Position numbers and translations under genes: made by a program | In this document: positions 9,525 through 62,473 of the stretch, in pieces | Position numbering within the stretch: the first letter of the stretch is position 1 | Layout: every line of letters begins with the position of its first letter | IMG/VR virus record: IMGVR_UViG_3300042868_005134 | Coordinates: 319,412-383,411 of that record | Reading direction: 5' to 3' (one strand) | Length of the DNA stretch: 64,000 nt | The notes under the pieces: model-generated | The model's database searches: none | Seen by the model: only the letters and a program-made list of their open reading frames with translations | Told to the model about the DNA's origin: nothing

Positions 9525-9554
9525 ACTTGCTCCAATGTGTTAAACAATATGTAT

Positions 9555-9583
9555 ATTATACAGTCAATTTATCTAGAAGTCAA
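9555..9583 (-). promoter_or_regulatory. Sigma70-type promoter
   Basis: TTGACT-17 nt-TATAAT. Confidence 0.75.
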
Positions 9584-9643
9584 GGCTTTTTTAGCCAAAA
9601 GAAAACCCGCCTGTTTAGCTATGCCAAAGTGAGGTGGGCCAAA

Positions 9644-9889
9644 TTATTTCTTTTTAGCGTCTGCTGGAGGTGCCTCTTTTGGTTTTTCAACTTTGGGCAT
9701 TTCTTTTGAAGGCTTTTTACATTCAGTTTTGTCAGCATTGGCTTTGTCCTTACAATCAATCTTTGCTGATTTTGGAACTCTAGCTTCTACTGTTTTATTA
9801 CCAACTTTGATGTCTTTGGTTTCTTCTTTGGCTTGAACCGGACTGGCAAGAACTAATGCCAAACCCATAACAAAAATAATATTCTTCAT
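9644..9889 (-). CDS. Small secreted Lys-rich protein
   Basis: Signal peptide MKNIIFVMGLALVLASPVQA; AGGAG RBS. Confidence 0.65.
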   Translation of the reverse strand: MKNIIFVMGLALVLASPVQAKEETKDIKVGNKTVEARVPKSAKIDCKDKANADKTECKKPSKEMPKVEKPKEAPPADAKKK

Positions 9890-9910
9890 GTTTATCTCCT
9901 ACGTAACTAT

Positions 9911-10201
9911 TTATCGTTGATAGCAGGTACGTTCACGAAGGATAGTACCATCTTGTTGTTGGACTTCTCTCCAAGAACTACACACCGTTTGTTGTTGTAA
10001 AATAATGGGTTGTTGTTCTATTACAACAGGTTGAGGAGTTGGTCGTGTTAGCACATAAGTAACTACACCTCCAATAATAGCAGGTGCCATCCAATTGTTG
10101 GCACTGCCATGCCAGTGATGATGTCTTAGGCCGTGTCCATGATGCTGTGCCATGGCAGGAACAGAAATCATCAACATTAAAGCTAACATAAATTTTTTCA
10201 T
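9911..10201 (-). CDS. Small secreted/membrane His-rich protein
   Basis: Signal peptide, His-rich stretch and one hydrophobic segment; AGGAG RBS. Confidence 0.6.
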   Translation of the reverse strand: MKKFMLALMLMISVPAMAQHHGHGLRHHHWHGSANNWMAPAIIGGVVTYVLTRPTPQPVVIEQQPIILQQQTVCSSWREVQQQDGTILRERTCYQR

Positions 10202-38303: not shown

Positions 38304-38395
38304 TGGTACCAGCGGAGGGAATCGAACCCTCTCAAGAACGCTAATCTGGCGCTAAAAGGCTTATAAGACCTCTCTGACTTCCAAGTCTCGCTGGC
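38304..38395 (-). tRNA. Atypical tRNA with TAT anticodon (Ile), long variable arm and 4-nt D-loop
   Basis: GAGGT-CTTATAA-GCCTT anticodon arm; GACT-TGGA-AGTC D-arm; 92 nt; CCA. Confidence 0.75.
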
Positions 38396-38792: not shown

Positions 38793-38866
38793 TGGATGCG
38801 GGTGACAGATTCGAACTGCCGATGCACCTGGCTTATGAGACCGGTGTGGTAACCACCCTACCCGCG
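38793..38866 (-). tRNA. Atypical tRNA-Met(CAT) with C1xA72 mismatch and reduced D-arm
   Basis: CGCGGGT/ACCCGCA acceptor, CTCATAA loop, bulged anticodon stem, CCA. Confidence 0.7.
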
Positions 38867-39523: not shown

Positions 39524-39608
39524 TGGTGGAGATTACTGGGATCGAACCAGTCGTGCCCGAAGGCGGCGGATTTACAGTCCACTGCATCACCATTGATGCT
39601 TCATCTCC
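39524..39608 (-). tRNA. tRNA-Tyr(GTA)
   Basis: Long variable arm, CTGTAAA loop, CCA. Confidence 0.93.
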
Positions 39609-39849: not shown

Positions 39850-41268
39850 TTATTTTAAATTATATTCTAAATAATTCTTAAAAAATTCTTTATTTTTTTC
39901 AGCAAGTAACTTATAGTCTAGGTCTTGTTTGTTTGTATTCATTATTTCAGAAAACTCAAAACCCGCACTCGCATGTTCTCCCAAACGCCAAGACGTTGGC
40001 TTACCAATATGGTCCATTATAGAATTTAGTGACTTAGAAAATTCTGTTACTGTTTTTGCGTCCCAGTAATCGTTTTCCCAAAACTCTGTCTGTAATGGTT
40101 TCATAAATCTGTAACCGTACTGGCTATAGTTCTCATCAAACTTACTTTTGTAGGCCGAAGCTGGATCTCTAGATATCCCTAATGGATTAAATCTCCAATC
40201 ATACATTTCATTGTCCAAACACCACTGATGAGTAGCGTATAAATCTTCTCTAGTTTCACCAGTTAGCCCAGCAATAAAACTCAATTCAAATGTTATTTCG
40301 TCTTTCCATGTTTGCTTTAATGTTTGTAAAAATTCTTTTCCGTGTACGCCATTCCAACCTTTACCTACAATTTTACAAGCATCCTTATGAAAACTTTCAA
40401 TTCCAAAGTATGCGCTTTTGAGTCCTGAGTCTTTTAATTGCTGTATTGAACCTGGTCGAGATCCTATCAAATCTAATCGATTGTAGCCAATCCATTCTAA
40501 CTTAAATGGTAAATTTTGTACTATTTCAGTTATAGCTTCCATTTTTTCCTGACTCTCGTTAACTGTATCATCAATGAAAAAATATCTAGTTGTACCAAAC
40601 GTTTCGTAATTGTACATAAGTTCTTCCTTAACCAAGGAATAATCTCTTAGATAAGTATTTTTCTTTTTACCTAGATTAGGATATCTGCAAAATGAACAAG
40701 AAAACTGACAGCCCCGACCTAATTCAATTGGCAACACTTCGTACGATTGAACAAAGTCATCTTTCACAAAAGCAGGACTAAGTGTTTTAATATCAAAAGG
40801 TGTCCGCGTTAACGATACATTAGATTCCTGATCTAGAAATTTTAATAAATCATTCTCAGCATTTCCGTGCAGCTTAATCCAATCTAAATAGCAATTTTTT
40901 GCGTATGAATTAGAGCCTCCTAAAATCCATTTTAACTGAGGGAACTTATTTTCAAGTAGTGGCCTCGAGTTTAAAATCCATTCGGGTTCGCTCACTACCA
41001 TAGATAGTCTGCCAGTCGTTGTTGCTTTGCGTAATGCCCCGTCGTGCCAAAATGTAGAACTTACACCTATGCCTATAGTTGTAGAGTCTACAAATTTCGA
41101 AGTTACTTCAACTAATTCATTAGTAGTAAATTTCTGACAAAAGTCTATTACTTTAACAGTATAGCCATGTCTCCTTAACCATGCGGCTAATTGATACGGA
41201 CCCAGTGGTCTCGTATGTCCCGATTTATCTGGTAGATAAATCGAATTCCAAATTATAAAATGTGCCAT
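39850..41268 (-). CDS. Radical SAM protein with B12-binding-like N-terminal domain
   Basis: RPLGPYQLAAWLR N-terminus; ELGRGCQFSCSFC (CxxxCxxC), FIDDT, GIES and FIAGL.GET. Confidence 0.88.
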   Translation of the reverse strand: MAHFIIWNSIYLPDKSGHTRPLGPYQLAAWLRRHGYTVKVIDFCQKFTTNELVEVTSKFVDSTTIGIGVSSTFWHDGALRKATTTGRLSMVVSEPEWILNSRPLLENKFPQLKWILGGSNSYAKNCYLDWIKLHGNAENDLLKFLDQESNVSLTRTPFDIKTLSPAFVKDDFVQSYEVLPIELGRGCQFSCSFCRYPNLGKKKNTYLRDYSLVKEELMYNYETFGTTRYFFIDDTVNESQEKMEAITEIVQNLPFKLEWIGYNRLDLIGSRPGSIQQLKDSGLKSAYFGIESFHKDACKIVGKGWNGVHGKEFLQTLKQTWKDEITFELSFIAGLTGETREDLYATHQWCLDNEMYDWRFNPLGISRDPASAYKSKFDENYSQYGYRFMKPLQTEFWENDYWDAKTVTEFSKSLNSIMDHIGKPTSWRLGEHASAGFEFSEIMNTNKQDLDYKLLAEKNKEFFKNYLEYNLK

Positions 41269-41301
41269 GAGATATTTATTGTACTATCGATCTCATGAAA
41301 A

Positions 41302-41967
41302 TTAACTAATATGTAGGACAGGAATAGTTACTTTCGGTTTTGCTGGATATTTTAAATCTGGTTTTGTATGATGAATCCGTCTGTTTCTATTAATATCTTT
41401 ATAACCAACTCCTAAAATTATCATAGGCTGTCCCTGGATATTTAACACTGTCTGAAGACCGGCTATATCAAAGCATCCGCAATAACCTGTTGAGTATCCT
41501 AATTGATGTGCTAATAGATTCAAGTATCCACTAGCTATACCTATGGACATGTGAATGTCGATTAACATACGTTTCTTTGCCGTATCCGACACTAAGCCTG
41601 CTGGATGTCTAAACTCTTCAAAGTACGTATTCAAATACGGCCTGTCTGAATTAGCTGTAAGTATATCTGCTAGTGTTAACTGTTCGAATACTACTAACAT
41701 GTTTGCCAATGTTTGTGAATTATTTTCTATGCTCATTGAGGGTGGAAAATCGAAACCACTTGTATTGTTGTAAACTTGTTCTATTACAGTCCGATTAGTA
41801 ATAAAATGGCATCGATAAAATGCAGCATTTTGTTTACTGGGGCATTGGGTTACTGCTTCAACTAATAAGTCGATATCTTCTTGCGGAATTGATCGTGTTA
41901 AATCCCAATTTCGTTGGCAATGTTGACTTTTTTGAATAGTAATTTTTACTGCTGATTTATCGATCAT
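41302..41967 (-). CDS. Nitroreductase-family protein
   Basis: QRNWD...IP.E...CPSKQN...LGYSTG.CGC...LGVG. Confidence 0.75.
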   Translation of the reverse strand: MIDKSAVKITIQKSQHCQRNWDLTRSIPQEDIDLLVEAVTQCPSKQNAAFYRCHFITNRTVIEQVYNNTSGFDFPPSMSIENNSQTLANMLVVFEQLTLADILTANSDRPYLNTYFEEFRHPAGLVSDTAKKRMLIDIHMSIGIASGYLNLLAHQLGYSTGYCGCFDIAGLQTVLNIQGQPMIILGVGYKDINRNRRIHHTKPDLKYPAKPKVTIPVLHIS

Positions 41968-44604: not shown

Positions 44605-44679
44605 TGGTGGAGGCCGAGGGAATCGAACCCTTCTAGTCACGATGCTTGCAAGGCAACGCCGTAGCCCACTACTGCCCCC
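44605..44679 (-). tRNA. Atypical tRNA-Ala(TGC) with 4-nt D-loop
   Basis: G3:U70, GTAG-TGGG-CTAC D-arm, CTTGCAA loop, CCA. Confidence 0.75.
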
Positions 44680-44913: not shown

Positions 44914-44988
44914 TGGTATCGCGTACGGGGATCGAACCCGCCTGAGTAAGTTGAAAGCCTACGGACCTCACCAGAAGTCAAACGCGAT
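44914..44988 (-). tRNA. tRNA-Glu(TTC)
   Basis: Cloverleaf, CCA. Confidence 0.85.
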
Positions 44989-44997
44989 GTAATAAAA

Positions 44998-45060: not shown

Positions 45061-45148
45061 TGGTGGAGGCTGATGGAATCGAACCACTTGACAGCCACCC
45101 TGCTTAATATGTCTACCGGGTTACAGCCGGCAACAGGGAACAACCTCC
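45061..45148 (-). tRNA. D-armless tRNA-Tyr(GTA)-like RNA
   Basis: 8-bp acceptor, GCCGG-CTGTAAC-CCGGT arm, T-arm and CCA; D-arm replaced by TTCCCTGTT. Confidence 0.65.
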
Positions 45149-45406
45149 AATTTGTTAACACACTCACGACCGGTAATTACCAATCCATAAGCAAACTATG
45201 TTCACTTATAAAGAATGTGTATATTAAAAGCCACTAGCAGGAAGAACTATGTTCCACTAGCCTCCAAGGACTAGCCCAACACCAATTGCTTTTAATATGA
45301 CAGATTTTTCGCTCTAGAAGAAGAGTTTCATCCTTGCCACCGCCCGTTTGCCCATGTTTTAAGTGCGGGCCAGGACCTCGTTTCCTGTATGTTCACACTT
45401 TGCGGT

Positions 45407-45569: not shown

Positions 45570-45605
45570 AAAAACAAAAAACCCCAGGAGTGTTAATCCT
45601 AGGGT
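45570..45605 (-). terminator. Intrinsic terminator of the putative attenuator
   Basis: ACCCTAGGA/TCCTGGGGT hairpin followed by TTTTTGTTTTT; its 5' arm overlaps the antiterminator strand GGACCCT. Confidence 0.8.
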
Positions 45606-45630
45606 CCTTGGAGTGAGCGTGTAATTTGTG

Positions 45631-45834: not shown

Positions 45835-46049
45835 ATTATAACGCCTTTCAGCGTCCCTGTCAACAACTTTTGGAATCTTTCTTTGTTGTATTTTTACAAC
45901 ACTCGCAGACTACATTGTTTGCTAACTTGTTTCTATTGTACTACTAATTAGTCTCTGTGTCAACAACTTTTTGTCTTTTTGGACAAATTGTTTTAACAGC
46001 GAATCTTTAACAGTCTTTCTATTGTATGTTTATTTAGTCTCTTTGTCAA
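45835..46049 (-). promoter_or_regulatory. Three tandem sigma70 promoters driving the leader and tRNA array
   Basis: TTGACA-17-TATAAT (45835-45863) and TTGACA-17-TACAAT (45935-45963, 46021-46049). Confidence 0.85.
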
Positions 46050-46118: not shown

Positions 46119-47144
46119 CTAGATTACATGTTTAGTTACCATAATTTCGTCAACTGTTAGACACTGTGATCGTCTACATATAGTTGGAATTGTGTTGAAA
46201 ACTATTTCATCGTTGAACACATTGCCAATCTTGCCATCGTTCTTACAAATGCCAAAGTGCATGTCGCCGTTGGCATCTATAGCAAGTTTTTTCATTCCTA
46301 CATTACAACTCCAGCCTTTGAACTTGTTTAAGTCTTTCATTATAATAGAGTATGCACTTGCCTGTGTAGTTTTAATTATGCCATCTTCTTCTACAGTTAA
46401 GTTTATCTTAAAATTTTTTCGATTGTTAGTGGGTGCTGCGTTTTTACGCTCATCCTCTATTGATTTAATAATAGCTTTTTCGTCTTCGGAAAAATAATCA
46501 AGAGTTAAATCAGACTTTTGTGTGTAATCTTCAAGGTGTCTACTTGTTTGGAATGGCAAATTAATGTGCTGGGTAGTAGTGTTTACTAATGGGAATATAA
46601 TAAGTTTGTTAATGCCAATCGAGTGCGGTTTTAACTTTTCTTCTAACACATTCACTCTATCGAACAGCGTAGGCACCAGCATGGCCCGTACTTCAACTTT
46701 GCCGCCATTTTCTTTTAGACGCACTGCAAGATTAACAAATTTTTCAATATCTGCGGTTTCTGGATGAAAACTAAGAAATATGTTAACAGATTTTAAAGCT
46801 TCGCTACAACGCTCGTACATCTTTGCGGGCATACTACCATTAGTAAAAATAAAAATCTTAAACTTGTGTTCTACTAATCGTTGTAAGAATAACTCAAAAT
46901 TTGGTATGAGAAAAGGTTCGCCGCCAGTTAGTACTACTAACACAGTTTTATCTTCCGGCACTGCTGCCTTTATCTTGTCCGATACTGCCATTAAGTCTTC
47001 GACTTTTGGCATTGTGTTAACATCTATAGTTCTGTGATTGTAAGGCTCGCAATAAGAACAGTCGTAATTACACATATCAAGTGGCTTCCAATGTACAATG
47101 TAATCAGTTAACCAATTGTCTTTTTCAATTCTTAGGAGATTCAT
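46119..47144 (-). CDS. Radical SAM protein with C-terminal Cys-rich (SPASM/twitch-like) region
   Basis: CNYDCSYC, TGGEP, TNGS, SFH and C...G...C...C..C. Confidence 0.88.
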   Translation of the reverse strand: MNLLRIEKDNWLTDYIVHWKPLDMCNYDCSYCEPYNHRTIDVNTMPKVEDLMAVSDKIKAAVPEDKTVLVVLTGGEPFLIPNFELFLQRLVEHKFKIFIFTNGSMPAKMYERCSEALKSVNIFLSFHPETADIEKFVNLAVRLKENGGKVEVRAMLVPTLFDRVNVLEEKLKPHSIGINKLIIFPLVNTTTQHINLPFQTSRHLEDYTQKSDLTLDYFSEDEKAIIKSIEDERKNAAPTNNRKNFKINLTVEEDGIIKTTQASAYSIIMKDLNKFKGWSCNVGMKKLAIDANGDMHFGICKNDGKIGNVFNDEIVFNTIPTICRRSQCLTVDEIMVTKHVI

Positions 47145-47160
47145 ATTTTGTAGCATAAAA

Positions 47161-47187
47161 AACAATGTGGCCGAAGCCACATTGTTT
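47161..47187 (-). terminator. Intrinsic terminator
   Basis: AACAATGTGGC-TTCG-GCCACATTGTT followed by a U-tract. Confidence 0.8.
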
Positions 47188-47203
47188 ATAAATCAATTTG
47201 TGT

Positions 47204-47797
47204 TTAGATTGATTCAATCCAATCTGGTATGTGATTTAAAACGTTCTTGTTAATTCCTAACAGTTCGTTAACTTCATTGGGCAGTACAGGAACTTCCATC
47301 ATTTCAGGATGCCACACTAAACCCCAGATTGGTTTAGTCTTATGTTTAAACCCTTCGATGTTGCCATCTAAGTCTACTGCAATTGCGTCATAATCAGTAC
47401 CTACAGTAACAATGTTAGAACCGTGGAAGCTATTAACTAACACATTATGTCCTTCCATTGTTACTACATGTTCTGTTCCTCTATGATTTTCAATATCATC
47501 ACACACTGCTCCAGATATCTCTGCTAGAAAAAATGCCCCATGACAAATACCAAGAATAGGAATATTGTGTTCTATAGCATAGTTATATAACTTTAACTCA
47601 GTGTACAAACGTGTCATACTAGAATTCCCGCCACTTAATATTAACATATCAAATTCGTAAATCTTACCAGTATCCACATTTGGTATGGGCATAACATCAT
47701 GTTTCTTCAAGAAGGTATGCCATACATGACTTAAACAATCATGTGTGAGACCGCTGTTTCCAACAATCTCTTCACGTTGACTAATTGCAATTTTCAA
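47204..47797 (-). CDS. Class I glutamine amidotransferase (peptidase C26/PuuD-like)
   Basis: LSGG, PILGICHG, VNSFH and WHPE. Confidence 0.88.
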   Translation of the reverse strand: MKIAISQREEIVGNSGLTHDCLSHVWHTFLKKHDVMPIPNVDTGKIYEFDMLILSGGNSSMTRLYTELKLYNYAIEHNIPILGICHGAFFLAEISGAVCDDIENHRGTEHVVTMEGHNVLVNSFHGSNIVTVGTDYDAIAVDLDGNIEGFKHKTKPIWGLVWHPEMMEVPVLPNEVNELLGINKNVLNHIPDWIESI

Positions 47798-47798
47798 C

Positions 47799-48578
47799 TT
47801 ATACCTGCTCTTGTGTTAACGGGCGAGTAGTTTTGCCATAAGCAGCTTCGATCATTTCACGAGTGCCTGGTAATTCCACTGTACCTTTACAGTTAACTTC
47901 GAACAAATCTAAACGCATCTGTTTTGCCAACTCAACTACGCGAGCTTGCTTTTCAGGTGTGTCACAGATTTGTAAAAGTTTACGACGTCCCATCTTGCTA
48001 TGAAATTTTTCATCACGAGCAATCTTAGCATAAGTGGTTGCAATGAAAGAATCTTCAACACAAGTTGCCATCATGGCCCAGTTACGTGCAGCACGGCCTT
48101 CGCCGATCAACTGATATAACGCCATGGCTAATTCGTCTGTGTCGCAATTATATTCTGTAAGAATCTTTGCGCCACGAATTGCTTTGTTATTTGCCATGTC
48201 AAACTCAACTGCTGCAGCAACATCGATAGGACCTTGATTTAGATATTCAACAACATCTTTAACCATACGGAAGTGATTGGCTTCGTCCAGGGCCTGCTTG
48301 CTCAACAACTGAAGTTCTTTTGGATCCATGTCGACTGGAGCATTAGCCACTTGGCCAGCAAGTTCAATCATGTTCATGCGTTCATTAACCATGCGGCCAG
48401 TGAAGTGCTTGACTAATTCTTCTCTTGTTCTGCCTTTGTAGTATGCTTCAACTTGACGCTCCGAAGCTGCAAACAATGTTTCATTTTCCGCTTCGATTTG
48501 ATCTACAAATGAAGTTACTTGCTTGCTGCCGACTTCTTCGGCTACCATTTTTTCTAATTCTGCTGTATCAAATTTCAT
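47799..48578 (-). CDS. Ferritin-like di-iron protein
   Basis: E...DEANH...E...DEKFH ligand set. Confidence 0.75.
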   Translation of the reverse strand: MKFDTAELEKMVAEEVGSKQVTSFVDQIEAENETLFAASERQVEAYYKGRTREELVKHFTGRMVNERMNMIELAGQVANAPVDMDPKELQLLSKQALDEANHFRMVKDVVEYLNQGPIDVAAAVEFDMANNKAIRGAKILTEYNCDTDELAMALYQLIGEGRAARNWAMMATCVEDSFIATTYAKIARDEKFHSKMGRRKLLQICDTPEKQARVVELAKQMRLDLFEVNCKGTVELPGTREMIEAAYGKTTRPLTQEQV

Positions 48579-48593
48579 AGTTAATTCTCCTGA

Positions 48594-49349
48594 TTAATAA
48601 ATTTCTGCCACTGCTGTGGTTTTATGTTCGCCGCGAGCATCTAATGCCCAGTCAGCGCCATAGAAATCTTCTACCATCTGACGGCTTTCTTCAATTCGCA
48701 TTGTGCCGTTACAGTTAACTTGGAACATATCTTTACGCATCTGATCAGCGATTGTACGTGCGTACTGTTGCTTTTCTTCTGTGTCAAGTAATTTCACTAA
48801 CTGTGTTTTACCTATTTTACTGTGGAAACGCTCATCAGCTGCGATCTTTGCGTATGTATTAGCAAGGAACGGATCTGTTAGGCAGTCTGCCATCATTTGC
48901 CAGTTACGGCTTGCTTGCCCTTCAACAATTGCTTGGTATAAAGCAAGAGCGATAGGATCGTTTTCGCAATTGTATTTCTTTAAAAGTTTAGCACCTTTAA
49001 CGAATGTGTCTTCTAGTTCACGTGTAACAGTTGATCCAATGTCGACTTTTTCTTCGCCGATATATTCAACTACATCACGTACCATACGGAAGTGATTGGC
49101 TTCGTCAAGAGCTTGTTTACATAGGCTCATGAGTTCTTTTGGGTCTGCGCTTGCGTCTGAATTTGCTACAGATTTCATAATTTCTGTTAAATTCATTCTT
49201 TCGTTAACCATTCTACGTGTAAAGTTTTTAACTAAATGCTCTTTAGCTGGCTTACTGTCGTAAAATGCTTTGATTTGTAATTCACTTGCTCTGTAAAGAA
49301 CTTCCGTATCTTCCCAGATTTGATCTACTACTTGTTCTGATGTTGTCAT
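48594..49349 (-). CDS. Ferritin-like di-iron protein (tandem paralog)
   Basis: RMVNERMN, KQALDEANHFRMV and DERFH. Confidence 0.75.
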   Translation of the reverse strand: MTTSEQVVDQIWEDTEVLYRASELQIKAFYDSKPAKEHLVKNFTRRMVNERMNLTEIMKSVANSDASADPKELMSLCKQALDEANHFRMVRDVVEYIGEEKVDIGSTVTRELEDTFVKGAKLLKKYNCENDPIALALYQAIVEGQASRNWQMMADCLTDPFLANTYAKIAADERFHSKIGKTQLVKLLDTEEKQQYARTIADQMRKDMFQVNCNGTMRIEESRQMVEDFYGADWALDARGEHKTTAVAEIY

Positions 49350-53073: not shown

Positions 53074-54534
53074 TTAAATATATGAAATTTTTGTTTTGTT
53101 AAAAAATATGCCGTACACTATAACCGATAATGTTATTACAAATAAGGTAAAACTTATCGGTCGATAAAATACATGATCCCATGCGTACAATGTATTGTAT
53201 TGTAGTAGCATCTTTTCCAATTGATCACTGAGTGCAAAACCCACAATTAAGGCGGCACGGCTCAGTTTGAGATATTTAATTACTATGCCTAATATACAAC
53301 AAATTGCGAACATGAGGTAATCTTCCCAGTAGCCTGTATATTGTACACTACTCCATAACAACAAAGCTATAATAGGCCAGAAGTAATATTTAAAAGGCAT
53401 AGCCATAAATTTTATTGCGTATCGTATAAACAATATTGAAATAATAAACGTTAGTGTCATTGACAACATGTAACTATAAGTCAACATGTTGAAAAATTTA
53501 GCATCGGTTAATAACGTAGGAGTACCTAGTTCAAGTCCCACTAGTACAAACAAACTCATTAATACAACTTCAAACGGAGCTCCTGGAACTCCAAACAATA
53601 TAGTAGGCACATAGCTTGTTGCTTTTTGTGCGTTGTTTGCGCCTTCGCTACCCACGACTCCTTTGATATTACCTTCACCAAATGGAATTTTTTCATTCTT
53701 ATTTAGGGCAACTGTTTGACCGTATGCTAACCAATCTGCGATACTGCCGCCGATGCCCGGTATAACACCTACTATAGCACCAATAGCGCCGCCGCGTAAC
53801 CCGTCCCATTTATGTTGCCAACTATCAACGAACCCTTGCCAAATTTGTTGCCATGGCCGCTCAGAATTTGTTACAGGTGCTTCGTACTGTTTTTTGTATG
53901 CTTCAACTAATTCCGGAAATGCTAATATTCCAGCTAACACCGGAATTAGTTGTATACCGTTGGCTAAGTAATCCCAGCCGCCTGTTAGTCTAGAGCTTCC
54001 ACTAATTGGATCGATACCCACAAGTCCAGCAAATATGCCTACAACTAGGGCAATGATTCCCCTGAACCAATATTCACTGTTGATAAAACACACACAACTG
54101 AATGCCAATAATAAAAACATCAACATTTCAGGTATACCAAATTTTAATATCAACGTAGCGTATAATGGCAAAAATACAAATACCATGGCACCCCAAATAA
54201 ATCCGTTTACTGTGGAGGTAACAATACTGGCACTGAGAGCTCTGCCAGCTTCGCCACGTTTTGCCATAGGAAAACCATCTACCATGGTGGCGGCACTGCC
54301 GCCCGCACCTGGTATGTTTAATACTACACTGCTAAAGCTGTCTCCGATTGTGCTGGCCACAACAATAGCTGTGGAAAAAACTACCAGTGTGTAAGGATCT
54401 GCTCTGAACACATCTAAAAAACTAAAGATTGTAATTAATGCAGTAGCAGTACCTGCAACAGGCACAATACCAAAGAAAAAGCCATACAAGGTACCTGATA
54501 GTAACCAGGGCAAATATTGTACTACTAGATCCAT
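53074..54534 (-). CDS. tctA: Tripartite tricarboxylate transporter permease TctA
   Basis: LNIPG...DGFPMAKRGEAGRAL, PGIGG and EGANNA...LFGVPG; about 12 TM segments. Confidence 0.88.
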   Translation of the reverse strand: MDLVVQYLPWLLSGTLYGFFFGIVPVAGTATALITIFSFLDVFRADPYTLVVFSTAIVVASTIGDSFSSVVLNIPGAGGSAATMVDGFPMAKRGEAGRALSASIVTSTVNGFIWGAMVFVFLPLYATLILKFGIPEMLMFLLLAFSCVCFINSEYWFRGIIALVVGIFAGLVGIDPISGSSRLTGGWDYLANGIQLIPVLAGILAFPELVEAYKKQYEAPVTNSERPWQQIWQGFVDSWQHKWDGLRGGAIGAIVGVIPGIGGSIADWLAYGQTVALNKNEKIPFGEGNIKGVVGSEGANNAQKATSYVPTILFGVPGAPFEVVLMSLFVLVGLELGTPTLLTDAKFFNMLTYSYMLSMTLTFIISILFIRYAIKFMAMPFKYYFWPIIALLLWSSVQYTGYWEDYLMFAICCILGIVIKYLKLSRAALIVGFALSDQLEKMLLQYNTLYAWDHVFYRPISFTLFVITLSVIVYGIFFNKTKISYI

Positions 54535-54598
54535 TTATTTCTTTTTGTCCTGAAGTTCACGTTCCAACCGTGCCATGGCAGTATAATCGTCTTCGTAG

Positions 54599-55450
54599 TT
54601 AAATACCCATTTCTTTGCGAATCTTCGTAGCACTAATAGCATGTGTTGTATCATCAAAGGTCTCCTGTTCAATTTTGTAACCGACGTCTCGTCCGTAGGT
54701 AATATTTACAATATTAGGTACAACTTGAATCTCGTATTGTCCTTGATATATAGGATCGAGGTCTCTTTTAATTAATGATTTCACTTGGTTAACTGCAAAC
54801 GGATTGCTATTATTCCATCCTTGGCAATCTCGGATCTGAATTACCACTTGACCTGTTTTGGCAATGGCACGTTCAAACAAGGCGCGATGCCCGGCGTGCC
54901 AAGGTTGCCAACGTCCCAACATCTGTACAGTTTCTTTCTGCCAATCGAACCGTGATCTGCGCTTGTTATCTAGAATATGTGTGCCCACAAACTCTACCCA
55001 CTTTTCAGCATTCTGTTCAATAATTCTGAAATCGTATTGTTCAGGTGGAACAAAGGCTTTGTTAGTGTCTTCAAATCGGCCTTGTTCAATAGTGTCCATC
55101 CATATAGTCCAATCAGCTTTATAGTTGTTTCGCATTTCAACTAACGGTGCTACAAAATCACAAATAACAAAATCACCTGTACACTTAACAGCAAATTCGA
55201 ACATACGAATGCTTTGACGAATCCTTCCCTCTTTGCTAAAATCCCAATCGTTGAATTTTTTGCGTACATCGTCGGCGTTGAACCAATCTACTTTAGCTTC
55301 CCAATGTAGCGGAGCGTTTTCAAATTGAGCTAATCTTTCCAAGGGCATTTGCGATACTGTGCTGTTGTCTTCTAAGTATTTTTTTAATCGCTCAGCAAAG
55401 TAAGTTTTGCCAGATCCTGGTAATCCCATTATTAATATTCGTTGTGTCAT
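54599..55450 (-). CDS. Adenylylsulfate kinase-like domain fused to an HxGH nucleotidyltransferase-like domain
   Basis: MGLPGSGKT, NADDVR and FSKEGR; second domain GRWQPWHAGH...ISATKIR. Confidence 0.8.
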   Translation of the reverse strand: MTQRILIMGLPGSGKTYFAERLKKYLEDNSTVSQMPLERLAQFENAPLHWEAKVDWFNADDVRKKFNDWDFSKEGRIRQSIRMFEFAVKCTGDFVICDFVAPLVEMRNNYKADWTIWMDTIEQGRFEDTNKAFVPPEQYDFRIIEQNAEKWVEFVGTHILDNKRRSRFDWQKETVQMLGRWQPWHAGHRALFERAIAKTGQVVIQIRDCQGWNNSNPFAVNQVKSLIKRDLDPIYQGQYEIQVVPNIVNITYGRDVGYKIEQETFDDTTHAISATKIRKEMGI

Positions 55451-55509
55451 AAAAGTCCTTGTTAGATTACAAAAGCCCCAAAGAGCTTTTGTTATTTTTT
55501 TAATGTAAA

Positions 55510-56064
55510 TTAGAATTTACGTGAATAGAAAAGTGCAGTCGATGTACCAGCACCATCACCGCGTGTGTCGTCATAACGTACACCTACTGTGTCGTTCTTT
55601 GTTAGCGCATAGCTGACATTGTAACGGGTAGTGTTAGAAGTGTCGCCACGTCCATCTTCAAACGCTGTGCGATAGCGATGTCCAATACGAGCAACTAATC
55701 CCGTAATTGGTGTACGATAAGAAATACCAACTTCTTCACTGTGATAGCTGAATGCTTCTGTACCACTTGGAGCTTTCATGCCAACAGCCAATCGTCCGTA
55801 TGCGTCAATTGGGCCAACGACTGTTGTTTGAGCACTTAGACCAGCTTCTGCACGGGCTGTAACTTTTTGTGTTGTTTCAGCTTGTTGCCATTGTACGCCG
55901 CCATCAATTGACAATAATTTGTTAATTGGTGCTTTAACACTTAAACCAATTTGTTGAGAGTTAGTGCCAGTGTCTGGGTTAGTGCTTTGGCGATCGATAT
56001 TGATTGATTGTGCGAATGCGGAACCGGCGGTTACTAGTGATAAGATTGCAAAAATTTTCTTCAT
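55510..56064 (-). CDS. Outer-membrane beta-barrel protein
   Basis: Signal peptide, alternating beta-strands and C-terminal YSRKF. Confidence 0.7.
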   Translation of the reverse strand: MKKIFAILSLVTAGSAFAQSINIDRQSTNPDTGTNSQQIGLSVKAPINKLLSIDGGVQWQQAETTQKVTARAEAGLSAQTTVVGPIDAYGRLAVGMKAPSGTEAFSYHSEEVGISYRTPITGLVARIGHRYRTAFEDGRGDTSNTTRYNVSYALTKNDTVGVRYDDTRGDGAGTSTALFYSRKF

Positions 56065-56137
56065 GTTTTTATTTCCTTTAAAAATGTCTGTTTGACATAT
56101 AGCTAGTATATAGCAGATCTAGAAGTGCGGCCAAAGA

Positions 56138-56496
56138 AAATGGCGCCAAAGGCGCCATTTACTGGTTGTTTATTTTACAAGGTAAGTCCTACCCCGGAGT
56201 TGCAGTTTCTTAGGCTGCTAGTTCAAAACGCTCGTCGTTTAAGGCGACGTGTGTTTCAAAGTACTCGAATGTATTTGCGTTTGCATTTACGGATTTTGCT
56301 TGATTTAGAGTCATCGCCTACTCAGTTGCCGTCTCTATTATCTCACCCTGTCGAAACCATGGCAGGCCCATCATAAAAACACAATACCAAAGTAAATTTA
56401 CACGGAATACCAAAGTAAATTTATGCTTTTATGGTGGACCTGGCGGGAGTCGAACCCGCGTCCAGAATGCCTTCACTTTGAAGGAATTACAACTAT
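56138..56496 (-). ncRNA. ssrA: Permuted two-piece tmRNA
   Basis: Acceptor piece (GCGGGTTCGACTCCCGCCAGGTCCACCA, ending 56432) precedes the coding piece (GGGCCTG...GGTTTCGAC, from 56369). G3:U70 pair; tag ANANTFEYFETHVALNDERFELAA at 56284-56210; terminator at 56138-56160. Confidence 0.9.
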
Positions 56497-56502
56497 ACGC
56501 TT

Positions 56503-56531
56503 ATTATAGCGCATTGTATTTAGTGTGTCAA
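56503..56531 (-). promoter_or_regulatory. Consensus sigma70 promoter of the tmRNA
   Basis: TTGACA-17-TATAAT. Confidence 0.85.
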
Positions 56532-56576
56532 TTAGTTTGGCAAACAATAAATACAACGAAAGAGCCGGGAGCGAAT

Positions 56577-56852
56577 ATGGACTTTTTAAAATTAGTAGCA
56601 GAACTAGGATTTCCCATTGCGGGAGCCATGGCCGCAGGCTATTTTGTGTTCTTAACACTAAAATTTATTCTTGCTGGTGTTACTAGCAGTGTAAATGGTA
56701 TGGGCGGTATTATTAAAGGCCTGGACAGTCGAGTTGACACTATGACTAACCAACTACAGCGTATCGACGTTAAAGTAAGCCATGCTTTAGGTCTACAGCC
56801 CGATTACGATAGAATCAGTCGTGCTGAACAAGCAGATCAAAGGAAAGACTAA
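56577..56852 (+). CDS. Small membrane protein (GFPI motif, YvrJ/BhlA-like)
   Basis: ELGFPIAGAMAAGYFVF TM segment plus coiled coil; start refined to MDFLKL. Confidence 0.6.
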   Translation: MDFLKLVAELGFPIAGAMAAGYFVFLTLKFILAGVTSSVNGMGGIIKGLDSRVDTMTNQLQRIDVKVSHALGLQPDYDRISRAEQADQRKD

Positions 56853-57031
56853 TGAAATATGCAGACTACGACTGGGATTTGTATAAAGACAGAATTGTAC
56901 TTGATCGAGAACTCGATATTGATAAATTGGAGTGGCGAGCAGGTGATCATTTTGAAATCAAGAACACGAATGGCAGGGTGGAATTAGTCAAAGTTGACCC
57001 TGTGGTAAAATTTGTAAAAGGATACAAGTGA
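56852..57031 (+). CDS. Small hypothetical protein (59 aa)
   Basis: MKYADYDWDL...LEWRAGD; overlaps both neighbours. Confidence 0.55.
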   Translation: MKYADYDWDLYKDRIVLDRELDIDKLEWRAGDHFEIKNTNGRVELVKVDPVVKFVKGYK

Positions 57032-57396
57032 TGGATCCGGTAGAATTAGTAAACAAATATGGCTTTCCTATTGTGGCCGCAGGTGGCATGGGATATTTCA
57101 TTTACTATGTATGGACATGGGTAACCACAGAAATCAAACCTGTTATAGGACAAGCCAATGGAACTCTTATTGCTCTTATTGATCGTATTCGTATGCTTGA
57201 TAACGATCTTATTCGGTTAAATCAAAAAGTTGAAACTGTGATGGAATTGCGAGGCAAAACTATCGAACGTGAGCGCATCGAAGCTGAAAAAGACATCAAT
57301 CAAACTAAACGTAAAGACGATGACGATGCTGTTGCTCCAATAGGGCCTAAACGTAAGGCCACTAAAGAAGAAATTAAAGGCGCTAGCGGCGACTAA
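57028..57396 (+). CDS. Small membrane protein (GFPI motif), paralog of 56577
   Basis: KYGFPIVAAGGMGYFIY TM segment plus coiled coil. Confidence 0.6.
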   Translation: MMDPVELVNKYGFPIVAAGGMGYFIYYVWTWVTTEIKPVIGQANGTLIALIDRIRMLDNDLIRLNQKVETVMELRGKTIERERIEAEKDINQTKRKDDDDAVAPIGPKRKATKEEIKGASGD

Positions 57397-59460
57397 TTAC
57401 TTCGAAGTAGCACGGTAAGTACCGTCCCAGTCTGCTGGAAGATCTCTGGAGCGCATTTCAGCAATACGTTCAATCCACAGTTCGTAGTAGTGATCCATAT
57501 TACCATAGAACTCGCCAGCAAGTTCTTGACACAGTTCAATGGCCTTGTCCCAGTTCTGTTCTCGATAGTATTGTAGCATTAGTTCGTGATGCTCTCTAGC
57601 ACTATGCCATTCGTCTGACACATTCTCATCTGGATTGTAGAACACTGTAAAAATATTAACACCTATGTTCTTGCCTTTAACAGCAATACAATCTAAGGGA
57701 ATAGTAAAGTACGCATCGCCTACTCTACTCTGTGTGGCTTCACTAATGATAATTAGCACACCGTAGTTCTTGGTCTGCCCTTCCAATCGAGCAGTTAAAC
57801 TAACACTGTCACCTAGTACATCATAGCCAAAGCGATCCTTACTACCAATGTTGCCAATCAGAGTAGATCCTGTGTTGATACCTATTCCACATCCTACTTT
57901 TGGCTTGCCTTCTTTCTCTAATTCAATGTTAAACAACTCAACAGCATGTAACATTTCTAAGCCTGTACGTACACCTGCCAGTACATGATCAGGATCTTGC
58001 GCCTCTTGAATAGGAGCACCATGAACATGTAAACTGGCGTCACCGATGAACTTGATCAAACAACCGTTGTTGCGTAGTATAGGTTCAGCAATGGCAGTCA
58101 TGTAACGATTCATAGTATGTGTAAATGCCACAACGTCATCTCCGTAGGTCTCACCTAAGCCAGTGAAGTTACGCATGTCACTCATCATGACAGTAAGTTC
58201 TTTCTTCTCTCCACCTAGTTTAATAAAGCTAGGATCTTTTTGTAAGCGTTCAACAATGACAGGGTTTACGTAACTTCCAAATTGTTTCTTGATCTGACTC
58301 TTTTGTAAGAACTCGCTTACAAACTTGACACCATAGGCATGTAGGGCGACCAAAGTTGTGCCAACTGCAAAGGCAGTAGCATCGAATAAGAATAGAAAAT
58401 TACTGTAAGCATAGATGCTGCCAGCAACACCACCACCGACCAATACAATGACTGCTGCCAATCCAACATATGTCCACCTTGTTAAAAATAATAATAGAAT
58501 ACCTACTAAAGCAATAGCTAGTATTTCTAAATCGTCTGCGTATCCAGGGCGCTGTATATTTGTCTGCGTAATCATAGTACCTATTACACTGGCTTGAGCA
58601 TCATGTGGCCACACTTCGCCACGGGCTGTCGCCACAGGATTGGCAAGGCCAGCTGCACTTACACCCACAATAACAATGGCACCATCGAAACTCTTTGGCA
58701 AAGCAACCAAGCTGTGTTCCGTAGGCTTCTTGCTCCAGTCAACCCAAATGCGGCCTAACTCATCCGTGTTTATTCTTCCAAATTTTGGCACACGTAGAGC
58801 TTCAACGCCTTGCTCGCCTATCTTAACTTGTACTCTAGGATCTTTGGCGGCCACACGTAATGTTTCCAATGCTAGTGCAGGATGTAAATTTCCTTGGCTA
58901 GCAATCACTAAAGGCATACGGCGCATCACGCCATCTACTTCGGGAAATGTGTTAACTATGCCCACGCCAGCAGCCACTTCTTCGAGTGCGGGAACATTAC
59001 TAATCAATCCAGGATACTCGACTACTAGGCCTTCGGGATCTTTTCCAACCACTTGAACAGGACTGCCAAATGATTTATTCTTTTGTGCGGTATGACCAAG
59101 TGTAGGTAATACCACTGGCAGACCTAGCATGGTTCTTGCTAAGGTCTGATCCTGTTTAAATCGGTCTGCTTCAGGCATCAAAATATTAAACACCACTAGG
59201 CCGGCATCATGGGCATACAAATCTTTTATGATGGTTGCGTAAATATCTCTAGGAAATGGAAACTGACCATACTTGTCCAAACTGGCTTCGTCAATGTTTA
59301 CTGTGTGTACTGGGATGTCGACAGCTGGTTGGTTAACAATCAGCTGATCAAAATAACGTAACCTTACACTTTCTACAAATACAGGATCTGCTATTCTTAT
59401 ACTTAATATAAGTACCAATGTTAGTAGAGCAGTCCACGGTGATAATAATATTTTTTTCAT
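57397..59460 (-). CDS. CHASE2-domain class III adenylate/guanylate cyclase
   Basis: NIDEASLDKYGQFPFPR and DGVMRR (CHASE2); TM bundle; SDMRNFT, KFIGDA, GIGINTG and GDSVSLTARLE. Confidence 0.92.
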   Translation of the reverse strand: MKKILLSPWTALLTLVLILSIRIADPVFVESVRLRYFDQLIVNQPAVDIPVHTVNIDEASLDKYGQFPFPRDIYATIIKDLYAHDAGLVVFNILMPEADRFKQDQTLARTMLGLPVVLPTLGHTAQKNKSFGSPVQVVGKDPEGLVVEYPGLISNVPALEEVAAGVGIVNTFPEVDGVMRRMPLVIASQGNLHPALALETLRVAAKDPRVQVKIGEQGVEALRVPKFGRINTDELGRIWVDWSKKPTEHSLVALPKSFDGAIVIVGVSAAGLANPVATARGEVWPHDAQASVIGTMITQTNIQRPGYADDLEILAIALVGILLLFLTRWTYVGLAAVIVLVGGGVAGSIYAYSNFLFLFDATAFAVGTTLVALHAYGVKFVSEFLQKSQIKKQFGSYVNPVIVERLQKDPSFIKLGGEKKELTVMMSDMRNFTGLGETYGDDVVAFTHTMNRYMTAIAEPILRNNGCLIKFIGDASLHVHGAPIQEAQDPDHVLAGVRTGLEMLHAVELFNIELEKEGKPKVGCGIGINTGSTLIGNIGSKDRFGYDVLGDSVSLTARLEGQTKNYGVLIIISEATQSRVGDAYFTIPLDCIAVKGKNIGVNIFTVFYNPDENVSDEWHSAREHHELMLQYYREQNWDKAIELCQELAGEFYGNMDHYYELWIERIAEMRSRDLPADWDGTYRATSK

Positions 59461-59468
59461 ATTAATAT

Positions 59469-61304
59469 TTATGGTCCGCCACCTTGTGTAACGCTAACAC
59501 TACATCCACTTAGTGTAGCACATTGTTGTGTAATGTTGATATTTTGGGCAGTAGAACCTTGTTGTATTAGATTAACTGTGCTAGAGCCGCCTGCATTAGT
59601 TAGGTTAATAGTAGCTTTGTGGCTACCCGCATCCTTTTGACTGGCAGTAACATTGTGTCCTGTGCCTGTTAAACTTAGGTCAAGGAAACTGCCACTGCCC
59701 TGCTGTGTAATATCAAACACATTGGTACTTCCGTTAACTATACCAAAGAATGTTTTCTCACCATTGCCCATTTGCTTTAGTGTGCCCTGATTGTTATTGC
59801 CTGTAACGTCAACATAGGCAAAGTGTCCGCTGGATATGCCGCCATCATTGCTTTGTTTTAGACTTAGAGTGTTGGTGCTGCCATTTATGTTTAAGCCCAT
59901 ATAGTGGCCGCCGCTTTCTTGGCCATCTTGCAGGCCTGTAGAAGGATTACGTGCTTGCCATAAGGTAATGTTATTTGTGTTGCCCGTAACACTGAATTCA
60001 AACAAGTTCTTACCCAGGGTATCACCTTGTTTAATATTGATATTATTATTGTCACCATCTAATACAGCATAAGTGTTTCCACCAATGCCTGCAATCTTAT
60101 TATAGTTGCCAGTCTGTTCAACGGTTACAGAGTTACCACTGCTGCCAATCTTTTGATCAAGGTGTAGACTATTGCCTAGCACAATGTTTGATACACGGCT
60201 CTTTGCTGAATTCTTTTGTGCGGTCTGTGCTAAACTAATATCACTAGTCGCTGGCCAGCTAGGAGCACAGTCAGCACAGACACTGCCTGCTTGTCCAGGG
60301 TTACTAGGTGTCCCGCCTGTGCCTGTATCTGTGCTAGTTACACCGTCACTTAAATCATAGTAGTAAGTAACTTCTGAAATCTGAACACTATTTCCGCTAT
60401 TGTTTTTAACACTGGGAAATAACATAAAGTAGTAGACATAGGCATTAGTATTAGTAACTGCTATTTCTCCGCTAACAGCATATCTACCATCGCTTAACGA
60501 TAGCGGACCTTCTTTAATCAGAGTCCATGTAACGCCGTCATTTGATCCATATAGTTTGTAGCTAGCAGGATCACGTTCTGGAGAATCGTTAGCAGTAGTT
60601 AATGTAAACTTTTGAACTACACGGCCTTGAGTTAGTTTAACAGTAACACCTGCGTTCTGCTTGTCAAAGTTTAGATATTTTGTACCCACATTACCGTCAA
60701 ATGCATTGACTGCTGTTTCGTTACTAGGGCTATTATAGCTAGTAGGATAGATGTTGCTGATTAGTACTGGACTAGTAGTTGTTCGAATAGGTTGCCAATT
60801 TGTAGTAGGAGCTGCTGGTTGTGCAGTTTGTCCGGCTGCTAGAGGAGTAGAACTGGCAAATGTATAGTTGTTTAGATCACTGCTAGTGACACTAGTATCC
60901 ATGTTAGTAAAACTAGCACTGGATCCGTAACTATATCCTGCCCCTGTTGTAATAACATTACCGAGCCAACCAGAACCTAGATAAAAAATAGCACCATTGC
61001 CTAGTGCTGTGATGTCTCCGTAATCGTGAACAACTTGTGCCAGTGTACCGTTGCTGTTCATCAACTTCAATCCATGTTTACCAGGATTAGTAGTGCTGTC
61101 AAAGAACTGAAAGTATTGTCCACTGGTTGCTGTTACTGTTTGAAAGTTTTTATTATAAGGTGCAATAAAGTTACTGGCATTTAATGTAGTTCCACTCCAG
61201 TTGTACTGAACGTCGAATATTTGATTGATGCCGAACTTGCCGTCAGTAATGGCAGCAAATGCATTTGAGCATACTAACAATAAGGCTAATAATATCTTTT
61301 TCAT
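59469..61304 (-). CDS. Secreted protein with discoidin (F5/8C)-like domain and C-terminal curlin-like repeats
   Basis: NAFDGNVGTKY...TANDSPERDP..YKLYGSNDG; repeated N-x5-Q-x-G-x2-N units. Confidence 0.75.
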   Translation of the reverse strand: MKKILLALLLVCSNAFAAITDGKFGINQIFDVQYNWSGTTLNASNFIAPYNKNFQTVTATSGQYFQFFDSTTNPGKHGLKLMNSNGTLAQVVHDYGDITALGNGAIFYLGSGWLGNVITTGAGYSYGSSASFTNMDTSVTSSDLNNYTFASSTPLAAGQTAQPAAPTTNWQPIRTTTSPVLISNIYPTSYNSPSNETAVNAFDGNVGTKYLNFDKQNAGVTVKLTQGRVVQKFTLTTANDSPERDPASYKLYGSNDGVTWTLIKEGPLSLSDGRYAVSGEIAVTNTNAYVYYFMLFPSVKNNSGNSVQISEVTYYYDLSDGVTSTDTGTGGTPSNPGQAGSVCADCAPSWPATSDISLAQTAQKNSAKSRVSNIVLGNSLHLDQKIGSSGNSVTVEQTGNYNKIAGIGGNTYAVLDGDNNNINIKQGDTLGKNLFEFSVTGNTNNITLWQARNPSTGLQDGQESGGHYMGLNINGSTNTLSLKQSNDGGISSGHFAYVDVTGNNNQGTLKQMGNGEKTFFGIVNGSTNVFDITQQGSGSFLDLSLTGTGHNVTASQKDAGSHKATINLTNAGGSSTVNLIQQGSTAQNINITQQCATLSGCSVSVTQGGGP

Positions 61305-62473
61305 CTGAAATTCTGATTGATAACAATCTGCCCCACTGCTTTACCACTGCTGAAATTCCAACTATTGGTCTGCATATCCTGTGTGACCACTACCAACACC
61401 TGTGTATTGATAGGCATGACTACATTAGCGTAATTTCTACTGTTAGGACTTAGACTCTCATATTGCCAACCAATCTGTTGTGTTTCGCTTTTGTCTTTCC
61501 ATAACTTTTTAACATAAGGATTTTCTGTTTCACTAGCTGCGGCAACATCATTGGCCAGCGCATCTTTATTTTCGGGTGTATCTAGACCAACTTTAGTTCT
61601 ATTCTCAGGATCTTCGTCGCCCTCATTGGCACTGCGTCCTTGCTTTGAAGCGCGAGCACCGCCGCCTTCTTTGTTAGCAGCTTGTTGTCGTTCTTCTTTA
61701 GCATCGTCCTTATCGTCTTTTTCGTCTTTCTTGTCTTTGTTATCACTCTTTTTAGCATCTCCGGTAGCCACTGCGGCAGCACGAGCGGCAGCAATTACAT
61801 TCATACCAGTAGTTGTTCTTGGTGGATTAACCATTAAGTTGTTGCCAATAGCCATACCGTTAAGGGCCACAATGACCGCAGGACTAGGCATTCCATTTAG
61901 AGTTTCAACTAGGGTAGCTTGATAAGGACGATTTAGTTGAACAATACCCGCTGGTGTTTCTACATCAATAGCACCACTACCACAGGTCAAGCCTTTTAGG
62001 TTTACATTTTGTTCTATTTCACAAGTGGGCATCAACATGATCATACTAGCACCTGTTTCGCTAACAGCCATCACAAAGTCAGTGCCACGAACAGCAATGG
62101 CCGCAGTAGGAGTGTTGATTTTTACATTCTTTGGGTCTTTGGCAATGCTGCCTGACACATAGCGCACAGTGCCTGCGGCTGCTTTAAGGCCTAACTTGCC
62201 AGCACCGCTTTTAGGATCATACACAAAGTCATCTATGATTAAACTACTTGACTCTGTGACTGTGACATTGGTTGCATCCTTAAACACAATCTTGACTTTA
62301 CCATTTTTAGTTTCAATCTTGTCGTTGGTTTCTATTAGGGTGCCTTTGGCAATTTGAATAGTATCCTTACCACGCTTAATGATGGCTGTGCCAGATGCCT
62401 CAGTAACAGAACCAATTTCTGCCCAAGCTGAACTAGCTACTAATAAGCCAATAATAAGAGAGGCAACTCTCAT
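61301..62473 (-). CDS. FecR-domain secreted protein
   Basis: Signal peptide; INTPTAAIAVRGTDF. Confidence 0.8.
   Translation of the reverse strand: MRVASLIIGLLVASSAWAEIGSVTEASGTAIIKRGKDTIQIAKGTLIETNDKIETKNGKVKIVFKDATNVTVTESSSLIIDDFVYDPKSGAGKLGLKAAAGTVRYVSGSIAKDPKNVKINTPTAAIAVRGTDFVMAVSETGASMIMLMPTCEIEQNVNLKGLTCGSGAIDVETPAGIVQLNRPYQATLVETLNGMPSPAVIVALNGMAIGNNLMVNPPRTTTGMNVIAAARAAAVATGDAKKSDNKDKKDEKDDKDDAKEERQQAANKEGGGARASKQGRSANEGDEDPENRTKVGLDTPENKDALANDVAAASETENPYVKKLWKDKSETQQIGWQYESLSPNSRNYANVVMPINTQVLVVVTQDMQTNSWNFSSGKAVGQIVINQNFR

Follow-up and report, generated by a model that had tools for sequence, protein, structure and literature searches.

When a tyrosine tRNA gene appears to have lost its entire D arm, is it a decaying remnant, or can the missing arm be replaced by something else in the molecule? 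This question is raised by a short element on the minus strand of a viral genome. The window analysed here is the 64,000-nucleotide stretch that forms the end of a 383,411-bp IMG/VR virus record (IMGVR_UViG_3300042868_005134), with about 40% G+C. The large terminase of this phage is closest to that of the Pseudomonas jumbo phage PA5oct group (55.6% amino-acid identity) and to that of Sinorhizobium phage Phosso (50.1%). The minus strand carries an array of about 40 tRNA genes between 36.3 and 45.15 kb, and the element, at 45061-45148, is the 5'-most tRNA-like gene of that array. The initial annotation had proposed that it is a D-armless tRNA-Tyr-like RNA in which a pseudoknot with the loop of the variable arm may replace the D arm, and had named covariation as the test.

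The element at 45061-45148

Reading the minus strand confirms every element that had been listed, namely an 8-bp acceptor, a 4-bp T stem, an anticodon arm with GUA, a discriminator A plus CCA, nine nucleotides (UUCCCUGUU) where the D arm should be, a GACA...UGUC variable stem, and CCCUGUU complementary to AGCAGGG in its loop. The parts, as corrected by the homologs described below, are as follows.

45141-45148 (minus): acceptor stem, 5' strand (RNA positions 1-8, GGAGGUUG)
45139-45140 (minus): two-nucleotide linker UU (RNA 9-10)
45133-45138 (minus): 5' strand of the crossing (pseudoknot) helix, CCCUGU (RNA 11-16), the inferred stand-in for the 5' strand of the D stem
45114-45132 (minus): anticodon arm, with a 6-bp stem (UGCCGG/CCGGUA) and the loop CUGUAAC; the anticodon GUA lies at 45122-45124
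45111-45113 (minus): variable stem, 5' strand GAC (RNA 36-38)
45104-45110 (minus): 5' segment of the variable loop, AUAUUAA (RNA 39-45), ending in the conserved AA that precedes the crossing helix
45098-45103 (minus): 3' strand of the crossing helix, GCAGGG (RNA 46-51), inside the variable loop
45095-45097 (minus): UGG (RNA 52-54), whose GG is a candidate stand-in for D-loop G18 G19
45090-45092 (minus): variable stem, 3' strand GUC (RNA 57-59)
45073-45087 (minus): T arm, with a 4-bp stem GUGG/CCAU and the loop UUCGAUU
45065-45072 (minus): acceptor stem, 3' strand CAGCCUCC
45061-45064 (minus): discriminator A73 and genome-encoded CCA
45149-45232 (minus): upstream cassette, with a -10-like motif (TTTTAATAT) and then a structured leader whose outer stem is ACACAUUC...GAGUGUGU and which ends 9 nt before the tRNA
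39527-39608 (minus): a canonical cloverleaf tRNA-Tyr(GUA) in the same array (Rfam tRNA, 36 bits), which is context and not part of the element

The standard tRNA finders that we tried miss the element: ARAGORN does not call it in standard, relaxed or mitochondrial modes (-mt and -mtx), the Rfam tRNA model (RF00005) gives no hit on it at or below threshold, and the Rfam tRNA-Sec model (RF01852) aligns it at 26.3 bits, below its threshold of 47. Moreover, on this single sequence the evidence for an unusual fold is weak, since the fold z-score is -1.57 and a 7-bp match between shuffled linker and shuffled loop arises in about 9% of trials (P about 0.09). Taken alone, the sequence proves nothing, and only comparative evidence shows the observation to be more than chance.

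Homologs and covariation

Megablast and blastn searches of the region against 50,697 phage records found nothing for the element itself, and a first pattern taken from its 3' end mostly returned tmRNA ends and an unrelated tRNA-Ala family. In contrast, five further pattern scans of IMG/VR widened the family step by step: acceptor, anticodon and T loop at a D-armless spacing gave 15 homologs; the anticodon arm alone gave 56 contigs; a pattern without the anticodon arm added copies with a compensated anticodon stem; an anticodon-free pattern gave 79 contigs and a second subfamily; and a looser 3'-half pattern added 13 divergent members. A blastn search with a subfamily-2 member then reached the cultured, temperate, 43-kb Rhizobium phage RHph_N3_2 (MN988526.1, positions 39882-39970), where the element is unannotated and is the only tRNA-like gene. 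A covariance model (R1), built without the pseudoknot, finds exactly one copy, at 66-111 bits, in each of 94 records, comprising the phage examined here, 92 IMG/VR contigs of 5-385 kb, and RHph_N3_2, with 67 distinct sequences among them. Ordinary tRNAs score at most 27 bits; PA5oct and Phosso, the nearest cultured relatives by terminase, lack the gene, and their best scores (26 and 25 bits, respectively) are ordinary tRNAs. A 19-mer of the anticodon arm, scanned over one genome from each of 185,579 prokaryote species, gave a single chance match in Morganella that is not a tRNA, and we therefore found no cellular copies in that scan.

Pairs were counted in the 94-sequence alignment for the acceptor (columns 1-8/80-87), the crossing helix (11-16/47-52), the anticodon stem (17-22/30-35), the variable stem (36-38/60-62) and the T stem (65-68/76-79). 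All five helices covary. Of all cells, 99.6% form standard pairs against 79.6% in shuffles, 19 of 27 pairs have changes on both sides, and the covariation score is 0.542 against 0.151 in shuffles, with none of 500 shuffles reaching any of the five observed measures. Sliding the partners by 1-3 columns drops pairing to 38-51% and the score to at most 0.096. The invariance of some positions (GGG, GG and GNC) was partly imposed by the search patterns, although the 56 contigs found by the anticodon arm alone all have these motifs; the covarying positions were never fixed.

Within the crossing helix the CCC/GGG core is invariant, and the next pairs are UA 30, CG 21, GU 13, GC 2 and AU 1 (columns 14-49) and AU 28, GC 23, CG 15 and GU 1 (columns 15-48), whereas columns 16-47 are UG in 64 sequences and CG, GC and UA once each, with all cells paired. 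The middle pair of the variable stem, which this helix crosses, is CG 31, GC 26, AU 4, UA 4 and UG 2. In a mutual-information scan that was blind to structure, the two variable pseudoknot pairs and this variable-stem pair ranked 1st, 3rd and 4th of all column pairs. Five of six anticodon-stem pairs covary, as do two pairs of the T stem (GC 49, AU 18; UA 38, AU 21), in which 97.4% of cells are paired. All eight acceptor pairs covary and are 100% paired; the 7th is UA 56, CG 10 and GC 1, and the 8th is GC 56, UA 7 and UG 4, which establishes an 8/4 split of the 12-bp acceptor/T branch, while the alternative 7/5 pairing would place an invariant A opposite C, A or G. Among unpaired positions, column 9 is U in 63 of 67 sequences and column 10 in 56 of 67, columns 45-46 are A in 67 and 66 of 67 while the rest of that loop segment is A/U-rich and variable, and both positions of the GG that follows the crossing helix are G in 67 of 67. 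Helix variants reassort among acceptor types, one acceptor sequence occurring with four pseudoknot types and two variable-stem types, so that the changes are many independent events rather than one inherited event.

These data support the pseudoknot proposed in the initial annotation, with two corrections. The crossing helix had been given as 7 bp but is 6 bp (CCCUGU/GCAGGG), since the seventh U pairs not with the loop (U17-A46) but with the A that follows the anticodon stem (U17-A35), a pair that covaries as UA 59, CG 5, GU 2 and AU 1. The variable stem had been given as four pairs, but only three (GAC/GUC) are conserved, and the fourth, A-U, forms in about half of the family. One may also consider an alternative in which there is no pseudoknot and the RNA forms only the nested fold, an extended anticodon hairpin made of the crossing helix stacked on the anticodon stem. 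This is indeed the ViennaRNA minimum-energy structure (-30 kcal/mol), and the variable stem is only 3 bp; however, the middle pair of that stem takes all four Watson-Crick types plus U-G with no unpaired cell in 67 sequences, making this alternative very unlikely. The scenario of a deletion pseudogene, which the failure of the tRNA finders and the weak single-sequence statistics might have suggested, is refuted by compensatory changes in all five helices, invariant loops, and conservation across 94 records at exactly one copy per genome. We are thus highly confident that the structure is real and selected.

Identity and genomic context

All 94 copies keep GUA in a 7-nt loop, including 79 contigs found with the anticodon left free. 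The discriminator A73 is kept in all copies, G1-C72 in 66 of 67 distinct sequences, and the T loop has the standard tRNA consensus. ACCA is present in 90 of the 94 copies; the exceptions, contigs that we denote L219, L220, L221 and L228, keep the discriminator A but encode no CCA. Three of these (L219:1427-1513, L221:3166-3252 and L228:889-975) form a divergent subgroup with C1-G72, the archaeal/eukaryotic tRNA-Tyr signature, which does not fit bacterial TyrRS rules. The gene sits in tRNA arrays, 5-12 nt from its neighbours. These are the features needed for RNase P processing, TyrRS recognition, EF-Tu binding and decoding, and the most likely reading is therefore that of a working tRNA-Tyr, probably cut out of the array transcript like its neighbours, charged by the host TyrRS (a search for PF00579 found no TyrRS in the phage genome) and used on the ribosome. 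Nevertheless, bacterial TyrRS uses the long variable arm, which is drastically changed here, so that charging is not assured, and most of these phages also keep a canonical tRNA-Tyr, so that the variant is not needed simply to supply tRNA-Tyr.

How might such an RNA keep the shape of a tRNA? The crossing helix runs straight into the anticodon stem with no unpaired base on its 5' strand, its UU-CCC...GGG letters seem to match the D region of E. coli tRNA-Tyr (U8 U9 C10-C12 / G23-G25), and an invariant GG follows it. From this we infer that the helix occupies the place of the D stem and that the GG replaces G18 G19, which dock on the T loop, so that an L shape is kept. Only 4-6 nt join the top of the crossing helix to the variable stem, and without a three-dimensional model the proposed contact between the GG and the T loop remains an inference.

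A canonical tRNA-Tyr co-occurs in the window and in at least 15 related loci, twice directly adjacent to the variant. These co-resident genes do not share the UU-CCC motif, so the variant is not a recent derivative of them. In RHph_N3_2, on the other hand, the variant is the sole tRNA-like gene, which fits a special-purpose tRNA better than codon supply. In that phage (locus L214 of our set, 1589-1651, plus strand; record about 39980-40042) it is followed after 9 nt by a hairpin that matches the Ro/Rsr-binding stem of Rfam YrlA (Y RNA-like) at 34.9 bits, below the threshold of 69 (E = 2.8e-6), and that lacks the model's 53-nt tRNA-like module; this may be a minimal Y-like RNA. No YrlA hit reaches threshold in 12 related loci or in the window.

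The upstream cassette is also shared. The leader in the window folds at -52.3 kcal/mol (z = -3.6), and about 30 related loci have at the same position a -10-like TG(C/T)TTTAATA motif followed by a leader hairpin ACACAC(A)UUC...GAGUGUGU with variable inserts that carry a CAUAG motif. Further upstream lie three tandem near-consensus sigma-70 promoter-like sites about 100 bp apart (12, 11 and 11 of 12 matches; 45835-46049, minus), followed by a terminator-like hairpin with 13 pairs (45577-45609, minus). Enzyme genes lie inside and just upstream of the array (39850-41967 and 46119-49349, both minus), namely two radical-SAM proteins, a nitroreductase-family protein, a class-I glutamine amidotransferase and weak ferritin-like hits, and these may be nucleoside or tRNA-modification genes. 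A phage-encoded permuted (two-piece) tmRNA of the betaproteobacterial type, whose tag ends in ...NDERFELAA, lies at 56119-56545 (minus) and is conserved in relatives (loci L132, L145 and L154). In L154, a 300-kb relative, a GOLLD RNA (Rfam, 192.6 bits; 9451-9914, plus) lies inside the tRNA array and encloses a tRNA. A block of cell-like genes at 53074-62473 (minus), encoding a TctA transporter, a CHASE2-adenylate/guanylate cyclase, a FecR-domain protein and an F5/8 type C protein, represents either auxiliary genes or a sign that the end of the record is not purely viral.

Possible roles and relation to known tRNAs

Why should a phage keep this RNA? The PtuAB nuclease of Septu and retron-Eco7 cuts E. 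coli tRNA-Tyr in the variable loop, whereas the tRNA-Tyr of the T5-like phage SP15 is not cut, and its variable loop is required for counter-defence (PMC12673091, PMC13096335, PMC11555353). The SP15-type tRNAs are normal cloverleaves with a longer variable loop; in the family described here the variable loop is base-paired and the core is rebuilt, which would be a plausible structural route to the same escape. We hold this explanation only tentatively, as nothing ties the hosts of these phages to a tRNA-Tyr nuclease, and our confidence in the account as a whole, a functional phage tRNA-Tyr of this architecture, is moderate.

An alternative explanation is that it is a working tRNA-Tyr without any link to defence, whose odd core is a tolerated or neutral variant that spread within one phage lineage and supplements tyrosine decoding. 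It does lie in ordinary tRNA arrays, phage 8/4 tRNAs are already known (PMC5389517), and these phages carry several other odd tRNAs. These include a tRNA-Ala(UGC) at 44605-44679 (minus) with G3:U70 and a tiny D arm (4-bp stem, 4-nt UGGG loop), which looks 8/4-like, has its anticodon at position 30, is found by Rfam only through tRNA-Sec at 24 bits, and recurs in many viral contigs, often right next to the D-armless tRNA-Tyr; a tRNA-Glu(UUC)-like gene at 44917-44989 (minus) with a 6-bp D stem and a 4-nt loop, a tRNA-Sec-style D arm, which ARAGORN misses, which scores 37.1 bits with Rfam tRNA-Sec, below threshold, and which is similar to an annotated tRNA-Glu of Rhodobacter phage RcXuper; and a 92-nt tRNA-Ile(UAU) at 38304-38395 (minus) with its anticodon at position 31 and a tRNA-Met at 38793-38866 (minus) with its anticodon at position 30, both reported by ARAGORN and recurring in relatives. 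The arrays of related phages also contain tRNAs with anticodon UUA that look like ochre suppressors (L217:1311-1383, minus, and L226:8492-8564, minus). However, most of these genomes already have a canonical tRNA-Tyr, sometimes right next to it, so keeping a second, radically different one under strong structural selection needs a reason. We consider this explanation doubtful, though it cannot be dismissed.

It is also conceivable, though unlikely, that the RNA is a tRNA-Tyr mimic not used in translation, acting as a decoy or sponge for a tRNA-Tyr-directed nuclease or another tRNA-binding factor. Over-expressed tRNA-Tyr, even cleavable tRNA-Tyr, neutralises PtuAB toxicity and partly protects host tRNA (PMC13096335, PMC12673091), and the Ro-binding-stem-like hairpin of RHph_N3_2 could point the same way. 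Nonetheless, one would not expect a pure decoy to need all of G1-C72, A73, CCA, the exact 7-nt anticodon loop, a 12-bp acceptor/T branch and a standard T loop.

The D-armless mitochondrial tRNAs (mammalian mt tRNA-Ser(AGY) and nematode mt tRNA-Ser) likewise have a short connector between the acceptor and anticodon stems (PMC7609411), but there the connector is unpaired and flexible, the T arm or elbow is degenerate and dedicated mitochondrial factors are needed, whereas here the connector forms a covarying 6-bp helix, the T loop is fully canonical, and the RNA is full-size (87-90 nt) and encoded by a bacterial virus. The (8/4) tRNAs, i.e. allo-tRNAs, phage tRNA-Ser and tRNA-His (Mukai et al. 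2017, PMC5389517) and bacterial tRNA-Sec, share the 8/4 branch, and members occur in phage tRNA clusters, but they keep a D arm, often with a long stem and a 4-nt loop, and have Ser, His or Sec identity; that paper does not report an 8/4 tRNA-Tyr. Canonical bacterial class II tRNA-Tyr shares the GUA anticodon, G1-C72, A73 and an extra arm between the anticodon and T arms, but has a 7/5 branch and a D loop, whereas here the GGG partner strand lies after the anticodon arm, inside the variable loop, rather than before it. Rfam 15 has no matching family, and we found no description of a tRNA with the D stem rebuilt from the variable loop, in phages or otherwise, either in the literature searched, which lacked most subscription journals so that prior description cannot be fully excluded, or in the 2020 review of non-canonical tRNAs. 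It is possible, although we put this forward only as a tentative reading, that the family would be the first class of D-hairpin-less tRNA outside organelles and the first natural elongator tRNA whose core is held by a pseudoknot, charged by an unmodified bacterial TyrRS, working on bacterial ribosomes, and selected because burying the variable loop makes tRNA-Tyr uncuttable by PtuAB nucleases of the Septu/retron type.

The shape of tRNA is among the most conserved features in biology, and loss of the D arm has been regarded as a peculiarity of animal mitochondria. This family shows an alternative, evolutionarily stable way to build the tRNA core, most likely inside the standard bacterial translation system. 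It also exposes a blind spot in tRNA annotation, since 94 genes were missed, one of them in a deposited genome of a cultured phage, and it offers a compact, possibly orthogonal tRNA scaffold for genetic-code engineering. If the link to defence holds, it adds a structural route, beyond sequence changes, to the tRNA arms race between phages and bacteria.
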